Translations under genes and position numbers: made by a program
NCBI GenBank assembly: GCA_047495785.1
Contig: JBLDXI010000019.1
Location: forward strand, 2,728,001-2,792,000
Direction of reading: 5' to 3'
Length of the DNA: 64,000 bases
Origin: Lepidodermella squamata
Taxonomy: Eukaryota > Animalia > Gastrotricha
Notes under the pieces: generated by a model
The model's input: only the letters and a program-made list of their open reading frames with translations
Database searches by the model: none
Told to the model about the DNA's origin: nothing
Part shown: one piece after another, positions 40,911-61,887 of the stretch
Layout of the letters: each line of letters opens with the position of its first letter
Position numbering within the stretch: position 1 is the first letter of the stretch

Positions 40911-42825
40911 ATGCATTATTACTCGACTGCTCTTTTTATTGTCCTCGCTTGCACATATCATACTTTGGTTGAATGCTTGCCTAGTTATGCCTCGCAATTA
41001 CCGAATGGTAACCGAGTTCCCGATCCGTGTAACCGCAGCCTGGTTTGGGCCGGGGTTGGCCATCAAAACTCGCAAGGTTCGGGTGAACTAAACTCGTTTG
41101 GTCTTGATTTTTCTCGAGCCGGAAAAAAATGGACGCGGGAACTGTGTCAAAAAGACAGTGATGGCGATGGGGTGACTAATGGCCAGGAATTGGGTGATCC
41201 GAACTGTAACTGGACCCCAGGAAGCCCCCAGCCTATCTCAACCAATATCACACACCCAGGTGTTTGTGAACCCACGGATGCCCCGATATGCAAGGGGAAG
41301 GTCGATTTTCTGGCTGCCCTTAACTCTCAATGCCAAACAGCGGGTAACGCAAATGCCTGGTGCCCAGCAATCAATGATGAAGGCGTTAAGGTATATGACA
41401 TGAGGTTCCGAAACTATTCGGTTCCTTTGGCTGAAACAGCTTACGACTGCATGGAGTTTCAACTGCCGGAAAATGATGATTACGAAATCATCGCCGTAAG
41501 TTTTTGATCAAAATTTTTAGAAGCAAAGGCGATTATTGCTAAATTAGTACAACGCGATCTATGAAAACCCTGAATTCGTTCATCACATGGTTGTAGTTGG
41601 CTGCCCGTCCCCGGTTGAGCAGAAACAGCTCGCAGAAACAAACGGCCGATTCAAAACTCCCAGCCGATGCAGTATGGGATCAACACCATGCTTGACCCAA
41701 GTTGTTCGCGGATCTGGGTACTATTGTTACGGCGACGATGTGGGCGTTGCATTTGGCAAGAGCTTCTTCGGCAAGTCCATCCTACAGATTCATTACACGA
41801 ATCCTCAGAAGAAAACTGGAAAGATCGACTCATCAGGGGTGATGCTTTACTACCAAAAGATCAAGCGACCTAACAAAATCGCGATTCTAACCCTTGGCCA
41901 AAAGTTGCTACAACTTGCCCCGCAAACGCCGAGGATATCAGTGAAAAGCGAGACTTTCAAGGACGATTGCAGTGTCAAGACTTTTGGCGGTCCTGGCAAG
42001 AAATATTCCCTAAGAGCCGCTTACTTCCATATGCATCAAACGGGGAGCTACGCCAAGGCTTATCTTAACAAAAAATCGACTGGTCAGCGAATTGTTCTGG
42101 CTGATATGTCCTTTTCCTACGACAGACAGCCCAGATCCGACTGGACTGCGGAAAACGCCCCGATAATCGAAGCTGGTGATGGCTTTGAGATCGAATGTAT
42201 CTTCAACACGACAGGCCGTGATACATGGACATTTTACGGCGAAGGAACTTACGAGGAAATGTGTTATCTATCGTTGGACATCACACCACCGGTTAATGAT
42301 AATTACAATTTAAATGGAGTTGAATTCGGTGGCATCGACTGGTGCTCGCTAACGTTGCCGACTTTCAACAACTGCTCAACAGCTGAATTCATGAAGAAAG
42401 TGAATGAAGTGAAAGAATTAGGTAGTTTCCAGTCGGAATGTTTATGCTCGGTCTACCCAGTGACAGCTTGCTCGAGGCGCTGTTACGATTTTCTGACCAA
42501 AACTGGCTTTATCAACATGAGACAATGCCTTGACACGCCGGCAATCTTCCGACTTGGCCTGGGGAAAGAATGGCCTGATCGCTTCAACATCAAAGACCAT
42601 TTAGCGATGTGTTTCAGGCTATCACAAGCCCCGATTTCAGAGGCGAAATGTGACACAGGTAAACTATTGCCTTTTTACCGCCCTAAAACACCAATTTTCT
42701 GTCTTTTTTACCCAGCCGAAATGAAAACCTTGGATGAACCAAAGAAAAACGGAGCATCGATTATTCTTGGAGCGGGATATTTCCTAACTTTTTGGGCTGT
42801 TTACGTCGCAGGGCAGCAATTTTGA
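40911..42825 (+). CDS. Copper type II ascorbate-dependent monooxygenase (DBH/TBH/MOXD-like) with N-terminal temptin domain (intron 41496-41547; probable in-frame intron 42659-42715)
   Basis: Signal peptide; temptin motifs LPNG..VPDPC...GVGH...NSFGLDF...DSDGDGVTNGQELGDPNC; Cu ligands VHHM, QIHY, HMH and EEMC; hydrophobic C-terminus. Confidence 0.88.
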
Positions 42826-42903
42826 GCCTAAAATCTGGGATTTTGAGGACGAAACATGGATCTGGAAAGAGTTAGTTCTGTTGACAGAATACCGCTGAGC
42901 GAA

Positions 42904-44367
42904 TTATTTGCTTTTGAAAGAAATTTGAATAAAAAATGAAGAAGCAACACTTACGGTATCCAAAGTGTCTTGTTGCTGAGTATCAATTGAGAGGATCATA
43001 TCCTTCAGGGACAGGCCATACATTCCGCACAAAGGTTGGTTTACTGCATCACCCGGGCTAGCCAAGTCTCGGGTATCGAACGGCCATGGCGCATTTGCCA
43101 AGGTCGACCCATCACGTAAGAGCCAAGCCATATTGGAATTAGGCCGAATGAGGCCAAACCAGAAAAAGTTGGCTTTCACACGATTTTCAGGCGGTCCGGC
43201 CAGTTGAACAGACCCATCCACGAGATTCATGGCCTTCGTATCGTCATCAGTCGTTAAAACCATCGCTAAATCACCGCCTTCGTTCTGACAAGCCGCTATC
43301 GCTTGGTACCAGTTGTATGGGCCAATTAGAATGAAGAATGACCGGGTGTAATTTTTCGCCGATCTTTGCGACGAGCTTGATAGATATGGCAGAGATGAAT
43401 TGGAGCTGGAAGATGAGTAGTATTGTTGGCTTGAATCACTGGCCCAATACCACGCTGGCTGATACTGATCTTTACCGGTCGATGAGCTCTTGCTATTGGC
43501 CTGGTAACGGACCATAATATTATAGAAAACCTGAAGAATTTCATTTAAAAACTTACCAATCCTAGTCCTTGAATCACAGCCAACGGAACTCCAACTGCTA
43601 GAGCTGTTACGATAATAGCAAAACCAAACGCCATCCAGCCAATTCGACACCTGCATCTGTATCGAACTTCTGGATCTTCCCACTCGAAATCATCAATAGT
43701 TGCACCGGGAGGGATATTTAAGAGAGCCGCAAAAGTCGCCGCAGGGCCACCTTGGGCTAAAGCTGGTCCTATCTGGTTCGGAAGGATAATTTTCGGGGCT
43801 CGCCTTGGCCCCCGCCTGGCCATCTCTTTCGGAAGATTTTTCGCTGTCCGTATCTTATCAGCCTTCGTTTCGGCCTCCGTATCAACGGGGAAGGCCGAGA
43901 CACCATTTGGCGTTAACTCGTTCACCGATCGACACATAGGACATCTGATAATGAGGACTTGAGTTGGTAGGGCAGGTTCTGGGGCGTTAGTTGTCTCGTC
44001 CACTTGATTAGGGCTGGTTGGTGTGGGCCTGGATTGTTCTGGTGGAGGTTTTATTATCATTTCCCGGTCCATCTGTTCGAGGCAATCGAGGCAGAAGGCA
44101 TGGGTGCAGTTGGGTAGGCGCCGGGGTGAAATGAAGAGTTCAAAACATATAGAACACGTTGCTGCTTCCTGATAGAAAAATATCACAAACAAGCAATAGA
44201 AAATCGAAATAATTTTTAAAAATTTGCGAAACCGTGTTTGGGATAGTCAGACTAACCTCTTCTGCATCTGTGGGCTGTTTAGGTTCCTTCTTATCCTTGC
44301 TTTTCACAGCCTTGCTGTTGGTTTTATTGCTGGTCCCACTCGCTGGGGTTGTTTTATTAGCAACCAT
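42904..44367 (-). CDS. RING finger - transmembrane - C-type lectin-like protein (exons 44367-44257, 44168-43557, 43500-42955 or 42904; 3' end uncertain)
   Basis: C3HC4 RING CSIC...CTHAFCLDC...CPMC, TM IGWMAFGFAIIVTALAVGVPLAVI, CTLD motifs NWYQAIAACQNEGGDLA and FWFGL; phase-0 GT-AG junctions link the ORFs. Confidence 0.75.
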
Positions 44368-44706: not shown

Positions 44707-45030
44707 TTATTCGTGTTTCAACGCGATGGATGTCATAGAAAAGTAGATGATGAGAGGAGCCGTGAAGCAAAGGAAAATCATGACGGAGAACAACATCATG
44801 CAGCCGTGTTTCAGGGTACAGCAACAAGCAGTGGAATCGCTTTTCACCTTCATCCCACCATCCTCTTCTGATATCGACGAAGTCTCTGAACGTAGGTCGA
44901 CAATGTAAGGCGGCTCGAAGGGCTTAATCTTGATTATGAGTTTGGCCTGTTGTTCAAGGTTTAGCTCACTGCCTTGCATGGTCGCATCTGAATCCATGAT
45001 CTCTTCGTAACTAGGCGGCGGCAAATTCAT
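44707..45030 (-). CDS. Small tail-anchored membrane protein with PPxY motif and Cys cluster
   Basis: MNLPPPSYEE...EPPY...ACCC...single C-terminal TM helix. Confidence 0.6.
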   Translation of the reverse strand: MNLPPPSYEEIMDSDATMQGSELNLEQQAKLIIKIKPFEPPYIVDLRSETSSISEEDGGMKVKSDSTACCCTLKHGCMMLFSVMIFLCFTAPLIIYFSMTSIALKHE

Positions 45031-45749
45031 AAAATTATTGAAAATTTGAGATCTGATAATGTTCACATTTAAAACTCGATTTATATAGCTACGCTAAGAG
45101 TGTCGGTTGAAGCCATGCCGATTTGTCGAATAATCAAGGCCGCCATTAAGTAGACCCCGTCATCACAAGTGTCTTGCGTGACTCGCAAATGCGATAAGCT
45201 GAGATGATCCTGGCTTACAATAATTGATGATCATTAACAACACACTTGAGCGAGTGCGCGTGGACTGAAAAGCGAGGACTCAACGATCCATATATTTCCA
45301 AACTCAATATACCTAAGTTCTCGTTCCTGTTTTCTGTAGATTTTAGGTGGAGCTTCACAACAATTCTTCAAACGTAGAACTTCTATGTTTTTTCTGAACT
45401 ACGTGGAGAATGTAGTTATCAGCGGGTCTTGTATCCGATCTTGTAATAGCAACGAATAAAATGTGAAATATGGAGTGAAAAAAAATCCACCTTAAAAGTC
45501 CATTGTTTCGAATGTTTTCTTTCCATTGCTTTCATGTGTTTTAATATCAAATTTCACGCAATTTTATCTTCTTCGGGTCATTTTTGAATCACGAAATTGT
45601 CCACTGAGATCTGCTGGATTTCTCTGTGGTTCCCGTATTTTTAGTAAGTTTGATTTACAATCATTTTTATCCATTTTTCCATACGAAACCGTTTTGAGAC
45701 GCAGTTGTATTCAAATACTTAATCCCCCCATTATTCAAATTTCCAGACA

Positions 45750-47810: not shown

Positions 47811-48241
47811 TAATTCAAGTGATCACCTTACATTTTTCTACTGCGATAAACATCGAAAGCAATTAAAGCAAAATCATTCATCGCATTTTATTCAGTCTTC
47901 AATGCTGGAATTGAAATTGAATCCATGTTTCAAGGATATATCTGCCCCACTTTTTCGAGTTCCTTGCCTACCCGGAGTTAGATTTGTTAAGAGTTAGAGA
48001 AGAGTAGTTCAACTATTCCGGATTTCGTGATACATGATCTAGCGTATAACTAGCTTCATTTTTAATCGAGTCTTATGACATACCCCGCCGACAAATTACG
48101 TAGGTACAACGCGAGTTCGGCTCATGGTCGAAATTCAATGCAGCTCATTAAAAGTCTCCCGTACGCTGCTCATTATTAAATATTATTTTATGTGAGTTTC
48201 GATAGCCATAAGCTACTAGTTCGTTTGAAAGAAACCGAAAA

Positions 48242-51178
48242 ATGCATTATTTGAGCATCAAGCTAGGGATATTTCTCTGTCACATCTGCCTGGCAGTATC
48301 ATCAAATCAAACAAACATTTCAATGCTTTTTATGGTGCCGATGACTGGAGACTCGCCAAGGAACGGGGAATCCTGCGTCATAGCGTCTCAAATCGTCATC
48401 GAAGAGGTGAATAGACAAGAAATCATGTTGCCTGGCTACAACATCATACCGATATTTCGGGACGAAGGAGGCGCTAGCAATTTGGCGATTCTGGAATTGG
48501 TGAGATTTCACCGACAGACTGGCGAATTACAATCCCCAATAATTGTCGGCGCATCTCTAGCAGGGGGCTGCAAAGGAACAGGCCTTGCCCTGCCGCATCT
48601 CTATTCATCACTTATTGCGCTGGGTTGTATCAGCCCTAGTCATATGAACAATCGAAAAATATACCCGAATACGTACCGAGTAAGATCAGGAGGCGATATC
48701 ATCGCGCTATCCCACCTCCGTTTCATTCGCGAAGTCGGAAAATGGAATCGAATCGGAATTCTCGCGAGTTCGTTGAATGAAGCTGATTATTCCATAGCCC
48801 TTACTATCCAGGGGGAAGGTCTGGCGAATGGCTTTGAAATTCCCTACTTCGATATTGTTGCAGACATAGACGATTCATCGCTGGAAGTTTTAACGAACAG
48901 GGATATCCGGATCCTCGATGTCATCATCAATGTCCCAGCTCTGTTTTACAAATTATTATGCAGAGCCCATGCTATGGGATTTACCGGGGAAAGGTACGCT
49001 ATAGTTGCCCATTCAACCATGTATGCTGAACTGTCAGGCCTCCCGGATAGTATCACCCCTGGATGTACGAAAGCAATAATCACCGCGAGCAATACAAAAT
49101 AATTTTTTGGGTTGGCTGGGCATCTCGAAATTACGATAACTCGAATGCCTTGTCATCGCTAGGCATGAGTAGGGACACATTTGAGGATAGGTTCATTCAA
49201 AAATGGCAGGCCAGAGGGAATAAGCCAGGAACTCTTCCCGCTGATTACGATCGCCGATCGTTTTGCCATGATGCTACGTTAGCAGCAATAATTGCCCTCA
49301 ACATGTCTGAGATTACCGTATTTCTCGAAAATATACGACACACCTGTATATATCCCCGCTCCCTAATACAACCCGACGAAAAAATCGTTTGTTCATATTT
49401 AACCCAGGCCTCGAAATTGTACCACAGCTATTTTAATTTGGGCGAAGCATGCGTTGGAACAAAAGAAAAGCCTTATTAATGACGCATTATCGTAATCAGT
49501 GATTAGCTATCGCGTAAGCAGCTTCGCAACGTCTGATCTTGGCACCATTCATAAGCCAGCAGAAAATGCCCATTCAGCATTCACTAGCTGAGACACAGAG
49601 TTTTATTTTAACATTTTCATATCCTTCTTAATCGTTTTAACCTTCTGGAATCGATGATGGCTGGCTCTCCTGATCGTCTTCAAGATTCCGTCCAGGTGTC
49701 CGAAGAAGACAAGCGAAAGCGGCACCGCAAGTATTCCCTCGCATTTTCACTGAATCGACAAATAAAACAATCTAAAAACGTCGTCTTAATACGAATTGCT
49801 CGCGGCTTTTTGTGATGATTCGCAATTAAACAGCACACCCGTATATATCCCCACTCCCTAATACAACCCGAATCAAAAATCATTTGTTCATAAATATAGC
49901 CCGCGGTAAATTTTCGAGAAATACGGTAAATTGAGATCAAAGGGCTTGTCTTTGGCTAGCTACAGAGACAATTCTTATTCAGTGATCGCAAAAGTGAACC
50001 AAACTATGGCCGAAATAGAATTCCAAGGGCTGAGAATAGGCAGATTCAAGTACTCGGAAAGGATAGAGCTCGACGACGATTTATATTCTGCGACTCAATG
50101 GAACGCAGCTGAGGGATTGAGAGTCATCTGCACCTTTCGAAGGAACAACTCTGAATCCCCACCGCTGAACTACTCGAGCTACTCAAATCGCAAGGATATT
50201 GGTTCTCCGATTTGGTTGTCGGGAGATGGAAAGGGACCGAAAGATCGTAGGCATGAGATAGTCAGCATCATAACAGTTTCCGTTACTTACTTCTGGATTT
50301 GCTTTGCGTTCAATACTCTAACAATCATTTCTCACGTCTTGCTTTTGATTCGTGGCTACTGGAGAGGGTCAAGGGGCTGTTATGAGTCATTATCAGCTGG
50401 AATTCTGTTAAATATCGCCTCAATATTTCTTGGCATACCACAGTCCTTCCAGATGGGGCTTGAATGTTTTTTCATTAAGAGAGCAAGCATTCTCCTTTCA
50501 CTTGCCGCGATGCATGTAAGATCGTTTTAAAAGAAGAGTAGCGTATATTTCATTTTTCAATTTCAGAATTTCCTAATGAAGTCGTTGTGGATTCATAAAA
50601 TTAATTTAGGATTACAAAGGCCTAAATCATCGGCGAAAAATGTACTGACGAGGGCTGTTTATCGCGAGACGAACAGGTCTAAGATACAGCCTGCAACTGC
50701 CTGGAAACAAAATGAATCGACGAAAAACATGAAAAGGCTGAATTTCCTCATTATCACCGGAACTATAGTTTATATCATAGCATGGCTAACATCCAGCACT
50801 CCTAAGCACTCCATAGAAGCAATAACCAGATTCTACGACCGCACCAGCGATGTTGAAACGACTTTGCTGTTGGAGAAATTTATCAGCAAATTTGATTTAT
50901 ATTTCGCCGTCGTAGCCTTGTTGCTAAATGCTGTGCTATTTTTTCTATCGTGCTGGCTGGCAGTAGGATTGAGAGGTAAAGCAGCTATTGATAGCCCTAG
51001 TTGTGGACTCCCTTCTTTAGGTCGCTTGAGAATCGCAACTGCTTCATTGACCACTCTCTTCGCAGCTGCAGTATTGCTCTTCTTTGTTTTCAATGACAAT
51101 GGTGGTTATCAAATGACAGCTTTATCAGTTACCTGTTGGATTTCGTCGGTGATTTTGTTAGCTGTTAGTAATTTCTAG
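48242..51178 (+). pseudogene. GABA-B-like class C GPCR C1, disrupted
   Basis: Venus-flytrap + 7TM paralog of C2/C3. Frameshift at ~49085 (GCTKAIIT/EQYKIIFW), MITE inside the CDS at 49316-49926, intron 50516-50566. Confidence 0.8.
49316..49926. mobile_element. Tc2/pogo-type (Tc1-mariner superfamily) MITE, 611 bp
   Basis: TIR CCGTATTTCTCGAAAAT at both ends; TA TSD at 49314-15 and 49927-28; internal ~60-bp direct repeat; removing it restores MSEIKLRSKG in frame. Confidence 0.9.
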
Positions 51179-51471
51179 ATGCTAGATTATCAAGGGAAAA
51201 AATACATTCTCAAGTCGTAACTAAAACCAAGTTTCCAAGCTGAGAAATCAGAATGATAATCAGATGATCTTGAATAATTCTAATAACGGCCGGCTGGAGG
51301 CTGGAGCATAGACCTGGGATTTGCTGAAAAATTAGTCGACCCCTGAAGACCTCCCCCTCCCCCTCCCCCTCTCACTTATATCTCGCTTTATACGTAAGAT
51401 GGGCTGTGAAGCCGGAAAAGAAATCAGTAACGCAGACACTTTTAATATCACTCTTTGAAACATGTCATCAG

Positions 51472-53852
51472 CTAGTTAACGCTGAGAAGTAGCATGCTCA
51501 TTGAAGCCAACCAAGTTATCACCGATAGCGAGACCATTTGATAGATCGGGTGCGAAGCTAAAATAAGGTGCAACATGAAACTTGCGACATAAAGCGTCAT
51601 TAAAATAGCCGCTGTTAAGCCCAGACGCGGAAGCATTTTGTCCGCGCGATACTGCCGTGCATGCTTCAATTGCAGAGCGACAAAGCAAGCGGCTATTAAT
51701 AGCAGAAAATTTGCACCAATAACAGGAAGCAGCCATAAGACTTCGACATCGGACGAATATGTCGATATGAACTCGGATTTGAATGTATCTGTTATCGGGT
51801 CGTATTGTTCAGCGTAATCCAACTCATAAAAACGGTACTTCGCCGGGGAAGTGGTAAACCATGCAATAAGATAAACTGCACAAACACTGACGAATCCGAT
51901 AGCTGCCTTGTTCAAGTAGGATTTCAAGTATTTTTTGTCGATTGATTGAACTGGAGTTTCCACTGCCGATGAGCGAATTGAAGAGAGAGTTAAGTGGCTT
52001 CGACTCTCACGCCCGATTGAATTATGGTGAGTAGCATAAAGAAGAGAAATTGCGTTTGATACTCGCGAGGATATTTTGATTTTCTGCTTCCGATAACAAA
52101 TTAAATGGCACAAGATACATACCTGTTTGGGAAAAACTATAGCATGAGAAGTTTTCACAAAAAGTAATAAGAAGAAATCCTTACTTGGGTAAAAGATAAT
52201 GCGAAAGTTCCGACAGTTCTTTGCAGGTAATAAATACCGACAATTCGACCAAAAGAATGAGGAAATGCTAAAGTGATGGACGCAAAATTGAACAGAAGCC
52301 CCACAATTATGGTATAAGGATTGAGGTAGAATCCTGGGTCTCTTTTCTTTCGGCAATAGTCGTAAACTCTCTTAACGATGCTGACACCGAAAGACAAGAG
52401 ATTTACTGTAGCGATTGCCCAAAAAAACGATTCTGGTATGGATAACGTGACGCTGACTTCTATTCTTCGATCTCGCGGTGGCTTCCCGTCTGAAGTGTCC
52501 CACCTTGGACTATTAAGGACCTTTCGAACAGAATAACTTGAGTAACTCAACGGAGGTGCCGAAGAGTTGTATCGGCGAAACGTACTCAGTATTATCTGAC
52601 CATCGGATTGTGTCCACTGAACCGCAACGAATAGATCATCGTCAACTTCTAACCGGTTCGAAAACTTGAAATGTCCAATCCTTAGCCCATTGAAGTCTAC
52701 TTCAGCCATTGATCGGTTTGCTATCGTTATCAATTCCTTTCCAGATGATACAAGGAGAGAGTCATTTACACTTGTCGATTTCTCCGTAGAATCCAGGGCG
52801 ATTATCGAGCTGAGGACAGCGTCGTGGCAAAAGTACCGCCTATCATAATCTGGGGGACGCCTATTAGCGGCACCTCCCCTTTGAAGCCATTTTGAGTCAA
52901 ATCGACGCTCAAACTCGTTTGCATTGAATCCAAGTGTTGAATTGGCATTTGGATCTTCATAGTTCTTCGCAGCCCATCCAATCCAAAAAATGTTCTGATA
53001 CTGCTCAATAACCATTGACTTCGTGCAACCAGGACTGATGGTTTCGCCCAATCCTGACAGCTCAATGAATGCCGAGAAGGGGGCTACAAAGGCATATCGA
53101 CTACCTTTTATACCCTTTGCAAAAGATTTACATAGGAAGGCTAGGAAAGGGGCTGGTAGGTTGATCAAAATATCAATTATTCGTACATCGGCCTCCAGTA
53201 GGCCATCCATTACAGAATCATCGATATCCGAAACAATGTTGAAATATGCGGTTTCAAAGCCATTTTCCAAGCCTGTGTTTCGCATGACTGAGGCGCTTAG
53301 ATAATCTGCTTCGTTCATGGTGCTAGTGATGATACCAATGCGATTCCAGCCGCCGATCTCGCGTATGAAGCGAAGGTGTAAAACTGCGGTCGTGTCAGCG
53401 CCTGACCGAGTTCTGTACGTGTTTGGATTCAGCCTTCGTTGGTTGATCAAAGTCGGACTGTTGCAAGCCAAAGCAACATGAACTAAGCCCAGGTGTTTAG
53501 CTACGGGGCCTACCGCCTTACACCCACCAGACAGTTGAGTACCGATGAATATGGGAGAGAAGAGCTGTTTCCTATCCTCTGATTCTCGAAGGAATTTAAC
53601 TACCTCCCGTAGTACAAAATTACTTCCAGCACCTTCGTCTCGAAATACTGGAACTACGTTGAAGTTGGGTAAAATGTCGCTCATGCGATTGACTTCATCT
53701 GTAACGATTTCAGCTGCAATTATGCACGATTCAGCGGTTCGCGGTGCGTCTCCAGTTAAAGGTAGTGTTACCAAGAGAGACACATTGAACGGTTTTCGTG
53801 CCCAGCCGCTTGCTGCAGCTAATAGGGTTGCTACAATGAAAAGAGAATTCAT
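51472..53852 (-). CDS. GABA-B-like class C GPCR C2 (exons 53852-52185, 52122-51472)
   Basis: Signal peptide, ANF-type VFT (NTYRT, GWNRIGII, HDAV), PPRD stalk, no Cys-rich domain, 7TM; 62-nt intron. Confidence 0.85.
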
Positions 53853-54807
53853 CACGCAGCTTGAAAATTCGAGAATTCTGCTTTGAGACAATTCTGTCTA
53901 AGTGGCGATGCCGATAATGGAGTCACAAATGTACGGACTTATCCGCCTCCGTGCCGTATTAGGGACGAGTTCGATGTGCTGAGACACCCCCGGGTGAGGC
54001 CCTGACGTGATCATAGTACATCGAGGTTGCGATCGAACGGACTATCTATTTCTGTTAGACATGTTTTGTTTGGCTCACTACCCAGTGATCCACCAACGCG
54101 CCAGAGTTAGCTTCTTGAATTGCAATCTCACAAAGCATTAGCCATGCATCCTGTGGCAATGACGGAAACAATCAAAGCATGGACAAATTGGATGCACGTC
54201 TCCCTTATTAATTTTCCTCCCTGATATGTGCTTCTTTGAAGATGATATTACAGCTCGCGGGGCCAAAGGCCAAAAAGATAATTCAACATCTCAATGAATA
54301 TTTCGAATACTGAAATCTGCACCTGATGGCAAGGCATAGTTTTTATCTGGGAAAACATATCCATCTATTTTAACTTTTTCTGGAGTCATTTAATGGGAAA
54401 ATTAAACTTGTTTTCGCGGGAAAAGCTAAGGTCCGATCAATTGTTTGGTCAATTTTTAACTTTTTAGATAAGCCAAAGTTCACTTTAGTGGAAACCAACT
54501 CAACATTCGACGAATTCATTGATTCTAAATGTATTCTACGTCAATTTATTGGAATCCTGATGGAGCACGTAAAATTGGGTTAGCAAAAAGGCGAACAGTT
54601 TATTGACACCCACGTGTCGATTTTGCACTGGATAAGTAGTACAAATTGAAAAAGTTGACTAGCCCAGCACTCCGCTGAAAACCAATAACAATTAAATTTT
54701 AATCAGCATGTAACTATGGCGCTGAATAAAAGCCTTTATTAAATAGCGAAATTATGAGCTACTGTTGCATATTTTCAATAACAGATCGCTGTACCACGGT
54801 CTAAACG

Positions 54808-56233
54808 ATGGTTAAATCGCTTGAATTCGGTTTATTTTCTATAATTGTAGCATTGCTAGCCCAAAAAGGCTCAACATTATCCTGCTTGGTTTGTCCCAAT
54901 GTAACCATTGGCTGTGCTGAGAGCGAAGCTGTGAAAATGACCTGTCCCGCTGTAAACGATGTTACCTGTGTGGTAAGGTTTCTAACTCCAATAAAATCTC
55001 TCAGCCAATATTCTTTGCTTCTGTTGCTTTTTTTCTTTTCTGCTTTTTATGAGCTTGATAAGAGCAGTAGAAGAGCATGTGTAGATAGACTTGAGAACAG
55101 TTCTTTTCCCTTTTTTATGATTTACTGATTCCCGCTTTGAAATCCCTTCAGCCAAGCTTTCCCTTTTTCCCCATGTCCGTTTCCCCCACAGTCATGCTGA
55201 TGTCCCAATTTGATTCTAGGCTTCGAGACCACCGGATATGCAAGCAGGAAAGACAGCGGCCACTCAAGCGCTAGCTAAGGCGAAAACCATCGCTGGTAGC
55301 CAGAACTCATCGTGCGTGGTCTATATTCAAAGTTTACTCGATATGGGACCACCAGGCGGACCACCAGGCGGACCTCCAGGGGGAAACAGCTCGCAAAATA
55401 TGGGCCCTCCTCCAACTGGAAACCCACAGAATATGGGACCTCCACCGACAGGCTCTCCAAACATGAACCAACCTAATAACTACATGTGCGGGACAACATC
55501 GGCCTGTAGCAGTAGTAGTAGCAGTGACAGCAGTGACCTGGCAGCACTCACCTCAAACTGCCCCACTCCTCAATACGCTGATGCCGTCAAATACCTCACT
55601 GACTACAGAGCTAGCGTGAGTTTTCCCCTATTTTCCAGGGGCGTGAATGTGAACCATCGATTTTTAAGGGGACCCTCATTTAGCGGAACCAAATTCGTTG
55701 TATCGGAACCAAATATGCTGTAGCGGGACCAAATTTTAGACTTTTCTATGTAGTTGCCTGAAATAATTCTAGAAAAGTCACCAGTGAATTCAGCGCAACA
55801 TTCTCAATAAGACAGAATGTTCAATCCAGAATTCGTGCTTATAGCCTAAAATTTGTAAAAATATTCAAGAAATGACTCGTGACATATTTCGAGTTTGGTT
55901 CCGCAAAGAGCTAATTTGGTTCCGCTACAGCATATTTGGTTCCGCTCACCGTAAATTTGGTTCCGCTAAAAGATATTCTGTTTTTAAGAGGGCTCTCGTT
56001 TGATTTGTATACAACAAACTCAGGAATTCGAAGCTGATTCTTATTTATGGTTCCGTGACACCGCCACCTAAAAAATGAATCCTTTCTTTTAACAGTCGAC
56101 AACGAAATGTTGTTCAACGGACAACTGCAACACGTTGGGAACTGCACGAGGCTCAGCTTTAATTTCGAACTATGCAATCAATGGGAGGATGCTTTCCTTT
56201 GCGATATTCATGGGATTCATTTGCATCCAGTAA
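54808..56233 (+). CDS. GPI-anchored Ly6/uPAR three-finger protein with large insertions (exons 54808-54972, 55220-55615, 56096-56233)
   Basis: Signal peptide, LSCLVC start, terminal KCCSTDNCN, hydrophobic tail; all junctions phase-0 GT-AG. Confidence 0.82.
55667..55997. mobile_element. Foldback-type MITE in Ly6 intron 2
   Basis: Arms built of three or four GCGGAACCAAAT subrepeats in inverted orientation (55680-55735 vs 55893-55970). Confidence 0.7.
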
Positions 56234-56721
56234 GGAATGCAATGGGAATTCAAAGGATGAACATTTCTCAGTTAATATATCATAACGCCGATTTTCCAGC
56301 ATTTGCATAAGGGATTATAATGTTAAAATTATCAGTTGCATAGTATATATGCCAAGTACTTATACATTGACCGTGATTTGTGTCCCTTACAACGTAAATA
56401 AATTGATTTGAATAAAAACCATACTGAGTGTATACGTAGAAGAATTCATGTAAGGCTTTCCTCTTCAAAATTCAAGGATGATAGGTACAATTAAAATTTG
56501 GAATGGACTCGATTGCAAATTCTTCTTTTCGAAAATCGCTTGGTATATTTCAAATGAATTTCTTCTTCCGTTCCTCAGCCAATCTTGCCGTTTTCTTCTA
56601 TAACTCGTAGATGCCTGGAACGAATCGTGTATTTCTCTCATTGATTTTTTGTTAGAGCGCGTGCTCGATTTATGCTCGACGCCTGAATTGATTCTTTTGT
56701 GAATGAAATCAATCCACGAAA

Positions 56722-58197
56722 ATGCAAATTGTATCATCTTTGTTTCGTCGTTTGATCGGCTTCGCCTTTCTGCTTCTAATCGCCTTCTTGATCGTAGAGA
56801 AATATTGTTTGAACCAATCCAGATTTCACAGTTCAATAACATCAATCGGCCGATCGAAGATTTCAATAAATTATCGCCAATGCCGCCAAAATTTCAACGA
56901 CAAAATGCTCGCTCTAAAGCAGTACCTCGATGACCCCACGCATCCAATACCAGCCAGCTTGTTCCTGAGCAGAGAGCCGAAGAATGTCATGGCTGTTACT
57001 CTAATCCTTGCTACACCAGAATTCGTCGAACGAGATGGTACTCACGAAGTTTGTCCAATGAGCGCGACAAATCTGCGCTTCTGGTTCGATGTCATGGAGT
57101 GGTTTATCCAGTATAACAACCAATCTGTCTCGTGTAATCTTGTCCAATCGTCAACTACCAATTTCTACAATCGCAATGCTCAAGTTATGAAATGCTATGT
57201 CGAATCTAGTTTTTTTGGTCTCGAAACTACTATGGATTTGTTTGAAGGCTCGCATGAAGTGGAATTCGATATTTTCACTAAATTTCGAAGACCAAGCAGC
57301 GATAGCAGCCAAATTTTCCCTGTCGCTGATCATCTTCCGATTTGCAATCTCGAATTTCCGAAACCCTTCTTCAATCTCGTTGCTTCAACTTTCGTATCTG
57401 ATGACAGCATTGACCGAATCCCTGAGTGGATCGAGTACCATCGACTGATCGGGGTCGAATTTTTCCTAATCCACGTCAATCGACCAACAGCGAGTCGTTA
57501 CGAAAAATTGCTCGACGTCTACATTAACAAGCTGAAAATTGTTGAATTGAGCGTTCATTACTCGGACATGCCAGTTAACACCCACTATAAGCTGTCTAAA
57601 ACGCCCGCGGATTTGGAGTCGATTAACCGGCTGAAAGGACGAGCTAAATGGCTGGCTCTCATTGATGTTGATGAATTTATCCAATTTTACCCTCGAAGCA
57701 ATTCTTTGAAAGCTGGATCGTTGGTGGATTATTTGAATATAATGCACGAGGGTAAACCAAATATGGGCGCGGCTGTTCTCAGCAATTGGTTCTTCGGATT
57801 TGGACCCGGAATTTTACCTCCTAGAAATTACCCGAAGAAATCCGATGATTTTGTTGTTTTCTCTCGAATTAACGAAATGACATGGCGGACAGAAAATTTT
57901 ACTCTGTTCAAGAAAGACCCGCATCATAAGTCAATTGTGCTGGTGAATCATGTGGCTTATTTCAACGTGCACAAGGTGACGTATGGTGGCAAGTCGTGGT
58001 GGGTGGATCCGGAGAGGGACATTCGGCTCGTTCACTATCGAACGCCTTATGATAGGTACTTTGAAGAGGCTGGTCCGGAATTCGTCACGGGTACGGCGCC
58101 TGTGGATCGAACTATGGCTGATTCCTATGGTCGTATAGTTGTTGCCAAACTGATGGAAAACGGATTTTCCGTTAACAGGACGACATATTATGCTTAA
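56722..58197 (+). CDS. Glycosyltransferase family 92-like (GT-A fold), type II membrane
   Basis: N-terminal TM, EWIEYHRLIGVEFFLIH, WLALIDVDEFI (DxD), KSIV...VH, LVHYR; intronless. Confidence 0.82.
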   Translation: MQIVSSLFRRLIGFAFLLLIAFLIVEKYCLNQSRFHSSITSIGRSKISINYRQCRQNFNDKMLALKQYLDDPTHPIPASLFLSREPKNVMAVTLILATPEFVERDGTHEVCPMSATNLRFWFDVMEWFIQYNNQSVSCNLVQSSTTNFYNRNAQVMKCYVESSFFGLETTMDLFEGSHEVEFDIFTKFRRPSSDSSQIFPVADHLPICNLEFPKPFFNLVASTFVSDDSIDRIPEWIEYHRLIGVEFFLIHVNRPTASRYEKLLDVYINKLKIVELSVHYSDMPVNTHYKLSKTPADLESINRLKGRAKWLALIDVDEFIQFYPRSNSLKAGSLVDYLNIMHEGKPNMGAAVLSNWFFGFGPGILPPRNYPKKSDDFVVFSRINEMTWRTENFTLFKKDPHHKSIVLVNHVAYFNVHKVTYGGKSWWVDPERDIRLVHYRTPYDRYFEEAGPEFVTGTAPVDRTMADSYGRIVVAKLMENGFSVNRTTYYA

Positions 58198-58493
58198 TAT
58201 AAACTGTTAGTTGTTGACGAATAAAAAGTTGATTGCCCTAAAGCATTTTCATCTATTTCATCTAAAGCATCTATTTTTATTATGCCAAGGAACATTTCAT
58301 TGCCGATGAATGGCCTGGGTGTGATCAGGGGTCCCGGAACTGCCAGGGATGGAGAAATTGACTAGTGATTTCAATTAAAGATTTTCCATTGAAACTTGTT
58401 CTAAAACCTCTCAAGAGTAGATTTTATATGTGTATATGTGCAAGCTCAATTCTTCGTTGAATTACCCTCATCGAATGTCGAAAATGCCCGCGA

Positions 58494-60845
58494 TTAGATT
58501 AGTAACATGCTCATTGAAGCTAGCCAAGTTATGACCGATAACGAAATCATTTGATAGATCGGATTTGAAGCTAAGATAAGATGCAACATGAAACCTGCAA
58601 CATGTAGTGACATCAAAATAGCCGCTGTTAAGCCCAGAAGCGCCGGCATTTTGTCGCCTCGATACTGTCGGGCTTGCCTCAATTGCAACGCGAGAAAGCA
58701 AGCGGCTATTAATAGCAGAAAATTTGCGCCAATAACAGGAAGCAGCCATTGAACTTCGACGTCGGATGAGAACGTCGAAATGAACTCGGATGTGAATGTA
58801 TCGGTAATCGGGTCGTATTGTTTATCGTAATGCAACTCATAAAAGCGGTACTTCGCGGGAAAAGTCGAAAACCATGCGATAAGATAAATACCGCAAACAA
58901 TAACCAGTCCAATAGCTGCCTTGTTCAGGAAGGATTTCAGCGATTTTTTGTCAATTGGCTTCACTGGAGTTTCCACTGCCATGGATCGGCTTGATGAGAG
59001 TGTTAAGTGGCTTCGACTTGTACGCCCGATTGAAGTCGCTCGCGGAGATGCCCGCGAGGATCTCTTTATTTTCTGTTTGCGATAACAAATCAGATGGCAA
59101 AAGATGCTTACCTGTTGCGAAAATAGTATATAACCAAAAAAAGCATTATTTTGAGAATTTCTTACTTGGGTCATAGATATAGCGAAAGTTCCAAATGTTC
59201 GTTGCAGGTAATATATACCGAGAATTCGACCGAAAGAATGAGGGAATGCTATGGTGATGGACGCAAGATTAAACATCAGTCCTCCCATGATAGGATAAGG
59301 ATTGAGATAGAATCCTGCGACGGCTCTCTTTCGGCAATAGTCGTAGAATCTCTTAACGATACTGGCAGCAAAGGAAATGACATTTGCCGTAGAAATGGCC
59401 CAGAAAAATGATTCTGGGATGGATAACGTGACACTGACTTCGATTCTGCGATCTCGCGGTGGCTTCCCGTCTGAAGTGCCCCAGCTTGGACTATTTAGGT
59501 CCTTTCGAATCGAATAGCTTGAGTAACTCAACGGGGATGTCGAAGAGTTATATCGGCGGAAAGTATTCAATATTACCTGGCCATCGGATTGTGTCCACTG
59601 AACCGCAACGAATAGCTCATCGTCGACTTCTAAGCGGTTCGAAAACTTGAAATTCCCAATCCTCAGCCCTGTGAATTTTACGTCAGCAATGGATCTGTTT
59701 GCTATCGCCATCAAATCTTTCCCAGAGGAATTAACGATAGACTCATTTGCCGCGGTCAGTTTTCCAGTAGAATTGAGGGCGATTATCGCGCTGAGGACGG
59801 CGTCGTGGCAAAAGTACCGCCTATCATAATCTAGGGGGCGCCTATTAGCTGCGCCTCCCCTCTGGAGCCATTTTGAGTCAAATCGATGCTCAAACTCGTT
59901 GGCATTATACCCAAGTGATGAGTTTGCATTTGAGTCTTCAAAGTTCCTTGTAGCCCACCCAACCCAAAATATATTTTGATACTGTTCAATAACCATTGAC
60001 TTTGTACAACCGGGGCCAATGGTTTCACCCAATCCTGACAGCTCAAGGTAAGCCGAAAAGGGGGCTACAAAAGCATATCGACTACCTGTTATACCCCTTG
60101 CATAGGAAGCACATAGAAATGACAGGAAAGGGGCTGGTAGGTTGATGGAAATATCAATTATTCGAACATCGGCCTCCAATAGGCTATCCATAACAGAATC
60201 ATCGACGTCGGTAACAATGTTAAAATATGCGATTTCAAAGCCATTTTCCAGGCCGGCATTCTGAATGACTGAAGCGCGCAAATAATCCGCTTCATTCAAT
60301 GAGCTAGTGATGATGCCGATGCGATTCCAGCCGCCGATGTCGCGTATGAAGCGGAGGTGTAGTATGGCAACTGTATCAGTGCTAGACCGAGTTTTGTACG
60401 TGTTAGGATACAGCCTTCGTTGGACTGTCAAAGTTGGACTATTGCAAGACAATGCAACATGAACTAATCCCAGGTGTTTAGTTATGGGGGCAATCGCTTT
60501 GCAACCGCCGGCAAATTGAGTACCGACGAAGATGGGAGAGACAACCTGTTTCCTATCCTCTGATTCTCGAAGGAATTTAACTACCTCCCGTGCTACAAAA
60601 TTACTTCCAGCACCTTCGTCCCGAAATACCGGAATTAGGTTGTAGTGAGGTAAAATGTCGCTCATGCGATTGACTTCCTCCATAACGATCTCAGCAGCAA
60701 TTAAGCACGATTCAGCGGCTCGAGGTGCGTCCCCAGTTATTGGCAGTGTTACCAAGAGGGACACATTGAACGGCTTTTGTGCTAAGGTTGTAGCCCATAA
60801 ACTTGCTATAGCGCATAGCGCTGTTAACATGAAACGATATCCCAT
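58494..60845 (-). CDS. GABA-B-like class C GPCR C3, recent paralog of C2 (in-frame intron 59112-59165)
   Basis: High identity to C2 throughout; intron at the homologous site is 54 nt and stop-free. Confidence 0.87.
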   Translation of the reverse strand: MGYRFMLTALCAIASLWATTLAQKPFNVSLLVTLPITGDAPRAAESCLIAAEIVMEEVNRMSDILPHYNLIPVFRDEGAGSNFVAREVVKFLRESEDRKQVVSPIFVGTQFAGGCKAIAPITKHLGLVHVALSCNSPTLTVQRRLYPNTYKTRSSTDTVAILHLRFIRDIGGWNRIGIITSSLNEADYLRASVIQNAGLENGFEIAYFNIVTDVDDSVMDSLLEADVRIIDISINLPAPFLSFLCASYARGITGSRYAFVAPFSAYLELSGLGETIGPGCTKSMVIEQYQNIFWVGWATRNFEDSNANSSLGYNANEFEHRFDSKWLQRGGAANRRPLDYDRRYFCHDAVLSAIIALNSTGKLTAANESIVNSSGKDLMAIANRSIADVKFTGLRIGNFKFSNRLEVDDELFVAVQWTQSDGQVILNTFRRYNSSTSPLSYSSYSIRKDLNSPSWGTSDGKPPRDRRIEVSVTLSIPESFFWAISTANVISFAASIVKRFYDYCRKRAVAGFYLNPYPIMGGLMFNLASITIAFPHSFGRILGIYYLQRTFGTFAISMTQVRNSQNNAFFGYILFSQQVSIFCHLICYRKQKIKRSSRASPRATSIGRTSRSHLTLSSSRSMAVETPVKPIDKKSLKSFLNKAAIGLVIVCGIYLIAWFSTFPAKYRFYELHYDKQYDPITDTFTSEFISTFSSDVEVQWLLPVIGANFLLLIAACFLALQLRQARQYRGDKMPALLGLTAAILMSLHVAGFMLHLILASNPIYQMISLSVITWLASMSMLLI

Positions 60846-61887
60846 TTCGCAGTTTGAAAAGTAAACGAGATTTGTGCGATTTAAAAAAAATTGAAAGTGA
60901 CAGTGAAAATGCATGGAACTTTTCACCCCCGTGCAGCTTTAGGTTGAAGCTTTTTGACACCTCCAGGTGATGTCTTGTGCGAACATAACCTTATCACGCA
61001 CATGGTTCATTTAGTCTTTCGACTCAAACGGACAAGCATTATATTTATTAGACATGAATTGATGGCATCATTTCCGATTACTCAGCAACACCTCTCAAAA
61101 CATTAGCTATGCCCCAGCTGCATCCCGTAGAACGAAGAATTGACTAATAGTCAAAGTATATTCCTTTATACATCATACCTTTCCCTTCCTGAAGTGTTTG
61201 TGATTAGGATGTTTTGATTAAACAATAGAACCTGGAGCATCGACATCCGATGTTCAGTCCAAATATAGTGAAATGTACTGACATCTACACCTGACACCGA
61301 AAGCACTTACCTTATCAGGTATCTTACCATTGCTTCAATAGTAGGCCATTCACTAATAATCACCCATAGTATCACTTGGTTCAAGTCGGCTTGAAACATC
61401 AACAAATCGAAACACTGACATTTCTTTTCCGGCTCTTACACAACTATTTAAAGGGTGTCGATTTTATAGTGGCAATAATCTTAGCCTTTATATGGAGTAA
61501 GCATCGTCGTCGGCGCGTTTTGCAGTTGCCAACTTCTTCAACAACCATCCTCTGTAAATATGAAAGCAAAAACTATTAAATAATTTTAATCTTGATGCAA
61601 ATAAAACAAATAGTAAATTTGGCCGCGTCTACTAATACCTTCACTTCAATTGTTTCAGAGGGTTCATTCATTCCATCATTTTCGTTTCCGGCCATCGGAG
61701 TCCTTCGAAGATGGATTGTTGATGGATATACGTGAGCGGCATGCGGCATTCGTAGCTCAGCCTGCAGCGGGAGCTCAGGGCTCAGGGCTTGCTGGAGCAC
61801 TGAACACTCGAGTTATGTTTATAGTTCATACTTTATTTTAGGAATGATGGTTACAAGGTACAAGGGGAAAAATAAATGAAAGTGGCT

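Follow-up and report, generated by a model that had tools for sequence, protein, structure and literature searches.

Membrane-spanning E3 ubiquitin ligases capture a membrane partner with an outer domain and ubiquitylate from the cytosol with a tethered RING; a 2025 preprint describes such ligases as built around type I proteins and likens the RING to a hook on a flexible line (PMC12458338). The MEGF8/Attractin-MGRN1 complexes, receptor-type ligases whose RING sits on a long tether, target signaling receptors at the membrane (PMC12458338). In the PA-TM-RING proteins (GRAIL/RNF128, RNF13, RNF167, and Goliath) and in RNF43/ZNRF3, an outer binding domain, a single transmembrane (TM) span, and a cytosolic RING are carried on one chain. 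These are type I proteins with a signal peptide, in which the outer domain (PA or a related ectodomain) comes first and a RING of the RING-H2 type comes last. MGRN1 is a separate cytosolic RING subunit on a type I scaffold, and the ectodomain of Attractin includes a C-type lectin-like domain (CTLD). The TRIM13/TRIM59-type ligases have an N-terminal TRIM-class RING and a single span toward the C terminus, keep the B-box and the coiled coil, and have few residues past the span. Finally, the type II CTLD receptors of the NK-receptor group (NKG2D, LOX-1, Dectin-1, and CD69) are oriented N-in, with a stalk and a single calcium-independent CTLD that keeps the canonical disulfides; their short tails signal via ITAM/ITIM or adaptors and contain no RING.

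A locus in the gastrotrich Lepidodermella squamata can be compared with each of these systems. It lies within a 64,000-nucleotide stretch of DNA (contig JBLDXI010000019.1, positions 2,728,001 to 2,792,000), which was analyzed as a whole and is referred to below as the window. Its best explanation, to which we assign a probability of about one-half, is an intact three-exon gene of 439 codons, encoding a type II RING ligase that crosses the membrane once and has a CTLD ectodomain. Like the PA-TM-RING proteins and RNF43/ZNRF3, the predicted protein would have its binding domain outside and its RING in the cytosol, on either side of a single span of the same chain. In contrast to them, it is predicted to be type II, with a TRIM-type C3HC4 RING that precedes the span and with a CTLD as the outer domain, and it has no signal peptide or PA domain; there is no sequence relationship to these proteins beyond the RING superfamily. 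With the MEGF8/Attractin-MGRN1 complexes it would share the receptor-type design at the membrane, but with the RING and the CTLD in a single type II polypeptide; no homology was detected to either MGRN1 or Attractin. Its predicted orientation and the order of RING and span are those of the TRIM13/TRIM59-type ligases, except that both the B-box and the coiled coil are missing and, if the transcript is spliced as predicted, some 198 residues follow the span. With the NK-receptor group it would share the N-in orientation, the stalk, and the single, calcium-independent CTLD, but not the short signaling tail or the canonical disulfides. Relative to the known membrane-spanning RING ligases, what is new here is most likely the combination of a CTLD head and a TRIM-class RING in a type II single chain.

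Gene model and neighboring genes

Three open frames on the minus strand are connected by two phase-0 GT-AG introns into the 439-codon model, and every coordinate that the original prediction had given for these frames and introns is correct. The features of the model, in window positions, are the following.

44367-44257, minus strand: exon 1, 37 codons including the ATG; a Lys/Ser/Thr-rich head with no domain
44256-44169, minus strand: intron 1, 88 nt, phase 0, GT-AG
44168-43557, minus strand: exon 2, 204 codons; RING, poorly predicted linker, and TM helix
43932..44156, minus strand: C3HC4 RING finger (exon-2 residues 5-79); the 46 residues that separate ligands 6 and 7 form a loop (44081-43944)
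43566..43643, minus strand: single TM helix, exon-2 residues ~176-201, with R-Y-R-C-R-C-R just before it
43556-43501, minus strand: intron 2, 56 nt, phase 0, GTAAGT...CAG
43500-42907, minus strand, with the stop at 42906-42904: exon 3, 198 codons; Ser/Thr-rich stalk and CTLD
43500-43351, minus strand: Ser/Thr-rich stalk, ~50 residues, S+T fraction 0.40
43350-42913, minus strand: CTLD, Pfam Lectin_C

The ATG of exon 1 is found in an aaaATGg context, the donor of this exon is GAG/GTTAGT at 44256 (the slash marks the junction), and the acceptor of intron 1 is pyrimidine-rich and ends in ...tttttctatcag. An upstream coding exon is required because exon 2 contains no ATG before the first RING cysteines. 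The donor of exon 2 is TTG/GTAAGT, and the acceptor of intron 2 ends in ...gttaccag.

The codon usage of the three exons resembles that of coding sequence. The in-frame log-odds per codon are +0.24 for exon 1 and +0.13 for exons 2 and 3, compared to +0.15 to +0.23 for the ten Pfam-supported open reading frames (ORFs) of the window that served as the comparison set, and they are negative in both other frames of all three exons. Stop-free runs of at least 198 codons appeared in 7 of 2,000 dinucleotide shuffles of the region, whereas one strand of the real region has two of them, 233 and 261 codons long; the predicted gene as a whole extends over its 439 codons without stops or frameshifts. The window is eukaryotic, with large exons and with introns of roughly 50 to 100 nt.

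A different 3' end is conceivable on the basis of a further pair of splice signals within and beyond exon 3.

42954-42862, minus strand: candidate intron 3, with GTAAGT, a CTAAC branch, and CAG, phase 0
42861-42784, minus strand: candidate exon 4, 25 codons

Although these splice signals are good, the four-exon model is disfavored on several grounds. The codon score of exon 4 is neutral (+0.02), and the exon overlaps the last 14 codons of a convergent plus-strand gene. The residues just before the stop of exon 3 align with the final strand of canonical CTLDs; this unspliced tail, which splicing would remove, also falls within the structurally aligned range. Nothing fitting a canonical CTLD C terminus was found farther downstream in a three-frame translation of 41500-42960. 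The stop at 42906-42904 is therefore favored; the four-exon form is less likely and would be at most a minor one.

The convergent gene (40911-42825, plus strand) consists of a Temptin_C exon (PF24784, E = 3e-39) and a 412-codon exon with weak matches to copper type II monooxygenases and a hydrophobic C terminus. Its stop is 79 nt from the stop of the RING gene, and the 3' ends of the two genes probably overlap. Directly upstream of the RING gene, on the same strand, there is a small gene (44710-45030, minus strand) of 107 codons, which starts with M-N-L-P-P-P-S-Y, ends in a hydrophobic span, and has no Pfam match. With a TATA-like box near 45090, a stop of its own, and, ~80 nt past that stop, an AATAAA at 44627-44622, it is ruled out as a source of extra 5' exons for the RING gene. 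We take its PPxY motif to be a docking site for WW-domain Nedd4-type ligases, and the juxtaposition of such a ligase-adaptor-like gene with that of a putative membrane RING ligase may be a coincidence. Elsewhere in the window, positions 1-36000 and 48000-61000 contain a dense array of at least a dozen ORFs, ~320-420 codons long and distributed over both strands. The five members that were sampled all have matches, most of them weak, to the ligand-binding or membrane domains of Cys-loop channels, and this array is followed by three ANF_receptor-type genes.

RING, membrane span, and lectin-like domain

Domain searches and fold models were run exon by exon, rather than with the joined 439-codon protein as the query. 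The RING of exon 2 has the spacing C-x2-C-x12-C-x-H-x2-C-x2-C-x46-C-x2-C, with all eight zinc ligands present (C5, C8, C21, H23, C26, C29, C76, and C79). It is recognized by two Pfam profiles, zf-RING_UBOX (PF13445; 31.5 bits versus a cutoff of 25.2) and zf-C3HC4 (PF00097; 25.9 bits versus a cutoff of 21); owing to the 46-residue loop between ligands 6 and 7, the profile match spans only the first six ligands. In an alignment of exon 2 with nine RING paralogues from the same genome, the eight ligands and two prolines are invariant, and the loop varies in length, being longer than 46 residues in one paralogue. The long loop is thus a trait of the family and not a defect. The identity of the RING to TRIM-like paralogues of this genome is 30 to 48%. 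The acceptor AG is located 9 nt before the first Cys codon in 8 of the 9 TRIM-like RING paralogues and 12 nt before it in exon 2, so that the position of the pre-RING intron is common to the TRIM-like family to within one codon.

The AlphaFold model of exon 2 has a pLDDT of 90 to 97 over the RING core (residues 1-40 and 71-110), with a helix at residues 97-111 after the RING. In Foldseek, the best PDB match is the TRIM2 RING (E = 2.9e-4, target TM score of 0.77), followed by those of TRIM23, TRIM21, and TRIM25. The earlier assignment of a TRIM-like C3HC4 RING is thus upheld by the zinc ligands, the Pfam matches, the paralogue alignment, and the TRIM2 fold match, all of which agree, and this RING is a member of the expanded TRIM-like family of the genome. 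Its C-S-I-C and C-P-M-C-R segments keep the C-x-I-C and C-P-x-C patterns, and the last ligand is directly followed by an Arg. We take the Ile, the Pro, and this Arg to occupy the E2-contact and "linchpin" positions; as judged from the residues, the pattern is consistent with E2-dependent ubiquitin transfer.

The similarity to TRIM proteins is confined to the RING. Pfam detects no B-box in exon 2, no Cys/His cluster follows the RING (the only cysteines past it are a pair at the edge of the membrane), and the predicted protein has no coiled coil, so its layout is not that of TRIM/RBCC proteins. Where the inspected TRIM-like paralogues of this genome have a B-box, in one case followed by a coiled coil, the predicted protein has a linker, the span, and the CTLD. 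The linker comprises ~60 poorly predicted residues between the RING and the TM span (low confidence and only short helices at residues 120-173 of the exon-2 model) and is probably flexible.

The sole hydrophobic span of the gene model reaches its Kyte-Doolittle 19-residue maximum, 2.51, at exon-2 residues 181-199; AlphaFold models residues 174-201 as a helix with a pLDDT of ~85. Four Arg residues, along with two Cys, flank the span on its N-terminal side; on its C-terminal side, the first Lys residues come only after 9 and 15 residues. The part of the protein before the span is more than 200 residues long and includes the folded RING. From the four Arg residues before the span (the positive-inside rule) and the long folded N-terminal part, we infer an N-in, C-out, type II protein, in which the RING would be cytosolic and the CTLD luminal or extracellular. 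The type II layout proposed in the original prediction, with a cytosolic RING, one TM span, and an extracellular CTLD, is backed by the sequence, the Pfam matches, the structure models, and the topology rules, the CTLD being placed either in a lumen or outside the cell.

Past the span, exon 3 begins with the Ser/Thr-rich stalk, which contains two N-x-S/T sequons (exon-3 residues 34 and 50) and is probably glycosylated. The domain that follows matches the Pfam profile Lectin_C (PF00059) with 26.8 bits versus a cutoff of 22.6 (E = 9e-6, profile positions 3-85 of 107). In an alignment that includes 13 further CTLD exons of this genome, it keeps the W-x-x-A-x-x-x-C motif as W-Y-Q-A-I-A-A-C and the W-I-G-L columns as F-W-F-G-L. 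Exon 3 contains two cysteines only, at residues 71 and 158, in the C1 and C2 columns; with other residues in the C3 and C4 columns, it departs from the pattern of four cysteines and two disulfides (C1-C4 and C2-C3). The best PDB sequence matches of exon 3, all weak, are NKG2D, the yolk-sac IgY receptor, DC-SIGN, and LOX-1, and the CTLDs of the NK-receptor group are among the best matches in both these sequence comparisons and Foldseek. A full HMMER search with exon 3 against 1.84 billion protein representatives returned 11 matches, all weak; 10 of these (all but the top match) were scanned, and each of the 10 contains Lectin_C. Among the ESM Atlas neighbors of exon 3, 27 of 30 are Lectin_C clusters.

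The AlphaFold model of the CTLD has a mean pLDDT of 58, with the second half below 50, and its best E value in Foldseek is only 2.5e-3. VIA-align superimposes it on the carbohydrate recognition domain (CRD) of collectin-11 with a Z score of 11.4 over 108 residues (rmsd of 2.7 Å, model residues 10-156 of 157); Z is at least 8 in 411 of the 534 top-ranked chains aligned, and every entry listed contains a CTLD, although a model built from an alignment with CTLDs is biased toward this fold. Judging from the sequence matches and the fold model, we regard the domain of exon 3 as a complete but divergent CTLD.

It was suggested earlier that the CTLD lacks the EPN/QPD and WND motifs and perhaps does not bind sugars. 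The first point is confirmed by the 13-exon alignment, in which exon 3 has D-A-V at the E-P-N column and no W-N-D. The second gains support from the same absence of the residues that act as sugar and calcium ligands, by which the domain, on its sequence, would not be a classical calcium/sugar binder. For the same reason, the label "glycan-sensing" that had been attached to the protein is unsupported.

Exon joining and genomic origin

The weak point of the gene model is the connection between exons 2 and 3, for which splicing is a strong but indirect conclusion. The donor of intron 2 is a perfect GTAAGT, its phase is 0, and its 56 nt are in keeping with the short introns typical of the window. 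If this intron were retained, the frame would end after three more codons, at a stop at 43547-43545, directly past the hydrophobic span, and the product would be a tail-anchored RING protein instead of a RING-TM-CTLD chain. Such a ligase, made from exons 1 and 2 only, with the CTLD frame left as an untranslated relic or used in a minor splice form, would have a well-known layout, as an N-terminal RING and a C-terminal anchor are also combined in TRIM13, TRIM59, and the RNF183 group. It would also suit the degenerate state of the CTLD, with its two missing cysteines and weak Pfam score. Only with intron 2 retained is the span at the extreme C terminus; in the spliced model, ~198 residues lie beyond it.

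Against this reading, which we consider unlikely, stands first the quality of the intron 2 donor, along with the usual size of the intron. Second, exon 3 is in phase 0, open for 198 codons, and coding-like in its codon usage, and it models as a whole CTLD. Its nearest relative among the at least 774 CTLD candidates of the genome is ~28% identical; a neutral relic so far diverged from every paralogue would be expected to carry stops, so that the open frame of exon 3 argues for selection on a coding exon. Third, exon 3 has no usable start codon or context, no signal-peptide-like segment, and no hydrophobic segment of its own. Since a domain of the secreted type needs a targeting signal, exon 3 must borrow its anchor, and the only span within reach is the one 56 nt upstream. 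We therefore favor the spliced, three-exon form.

Relatives of the exons were sought in the 121-Mb assembly of 151 contigs, in which the window belongs to contig 19. Exon 2 has at least 70 further RING matches in this genome, mostly in tandem arrays. It matches them through the RING alone, and the inspected paralogues continue into a B-box, in one case with a coiled coil. The TRIM-like RING exon candidates, 150 and all scored, form very large tandem expansions. So do the CTLD candidates, at least 774 on a first look, nearly all of which contain the complete domain within a single open frame. Tandem expansions of CTLD or RING exons can be seen, for example, at C36:95000-275000, C46:1048000-1210000, C55:729000-809000, and C25:845000-930000 (contig number and positions). 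Close to one mucin-like, Thr-rich CTLD gene, whose frame stops abruptly, contig C17 has an adjoining 462-codon frame (near 689.5-690.9 kb, plus strand) that by eye resembles the reverse transcriptase of non-LTR retrotransposons.

No paralogue with the same RING-TM-CTLD layout was found in the exon searches of this genome and among the paralogues inspected, and no genomic paralogue matches the linker, the span, or the CTLD closely. Among the matches listed, inspected by eye, this gene is the only place where a RING match is found within 10 kb of a CTLD match. Beyond the genome, word-based protein searches with exons 2 and 3, metagenome contig scans with both exons, and a genome contig scan with exon 3 gave no match. 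The 10 scanned HMMER matches to exon 3 (of 11) are generic CTLD proteins, and there is neither a close relative nor a protein with a RING among them. A word-based protein search with an exon of the convergent neighbor found no relative either; the empty searches thus reflect the poor sampling of the lineage and are silent on expression. In the literature searched, there were no names of the RING-CTLD type and no description of a type II RING ligase with an ectodomain. As to the novelty of this combination, no match, locus, or paper with RING-TM-CTLD was found; that it has never been seen is unproven, as such searches find relatives and not architectures.

The gene most likely arose within the lineage by exon shuffling, with the RING exon coming from the TRIM-like family and the other exon from the CTLD family. 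The same origin allows for a young, nonfunctional chimera that is not expressed or is decaying, which seems to us quite improbable. Both parent families are hugely expanded in the genome, the gene is present in a single copy with no orthologue or paralogue found that has the same linker, span, or CTLD, and two structural cysteines are gone, all of which speaks for such a product. A decaying gene sits poorly with 439 codons free of stops and frameshifts, a complete set of RING ligands, good splice sites and codon usage, and a Kozak-like start. In addition, the CTLD is far diverged from its nearest relatives and so is no recent copy, yet its frame is intact.

Possible function and significance

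For a functional three-exon gene, a mechanism can be modeled on GRAIL, RNF43/ZNRF3, and the MEGF8/Attractin-MGRN1 complexes. Given the predicted splicing, topology, and ligase activity, the cytosolic TRIM-type C3HC4 RING, held on its probably flexible stretch of ~60 residues, would recruit a ubiquitin-charged E2. The outer CTLD on its Ser/Thr-rich stalk would bind a partner, the putative ligand being more likely a protein or something unusual than a standard sugar. The tethered RING could then ubiquitylate the cytosolic face of this partner, of a neighbor, or of itself as the presumptive substrate, and the modification would set the endocytosis or degradation of the target. Ligand-directed ubiquitylation by the predicted ligase is, at this point, a hypothesis.

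The same protein might instead act within the secretory pathway (in the ER, Golgi, or endosome), with a luminal CTLD that picks clients for ubiquitylation. In that case, it would fuse two roles that are divided in ER-associated degradation between proteins acting in trans, the OS-9/Yos9 lectins and the HRD1 RING. The ER is the site of action of many membrane RING ligases, TRIM13 among them; the predicted protein has no sorting signal that would argue for the cell surface, and the loss of both canonical disulfides fits a domain kept away from the harsh extracellular space. Selection of clients by their glycans is unlikely in view of the missing sugar and calcium ligand residues, and stalks that are rich in Ser/Thr and bear sequons are found more typically on receptors of the cell surface. 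This makes the secretory-pathway setting, including the fusion of the two roles, a rather doubtful one in our estimate.

A bolder version of the three-exon reading, in which the protein would be gated by its ligand and would be the first ubiquitin ligase of the receptor type to consist of a single type II chain, is an equally long shot. Multivalent outer ligands would cluster or dimerize the RINGs and thereby switch on ubiquitylation, a scheme proposed because this RING is without the B-box and coiled coil that normally unite such RINGs. If true, a ligand-gated RING-CTLD protein would be the ubiquitin counterpart of a receptor tyrosine kinase.

The weight of the finding is limited for now, as it concerns a single orphan gene from a poorly sampled animal. 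Through membrane-spanning RING ligases, events on the outside can set receptor levels by way of ubiquitin, and a naturally occurring type II form, whose head is lectin-like and whose RING is of the TRIM class, would broaden the range of designs known for these proteins. It would also offer a compact single-chain model for how binding on the outside controls a RING inside the cell, and it would show that exon shuffling between two expanded families can make a new kind of receptor.
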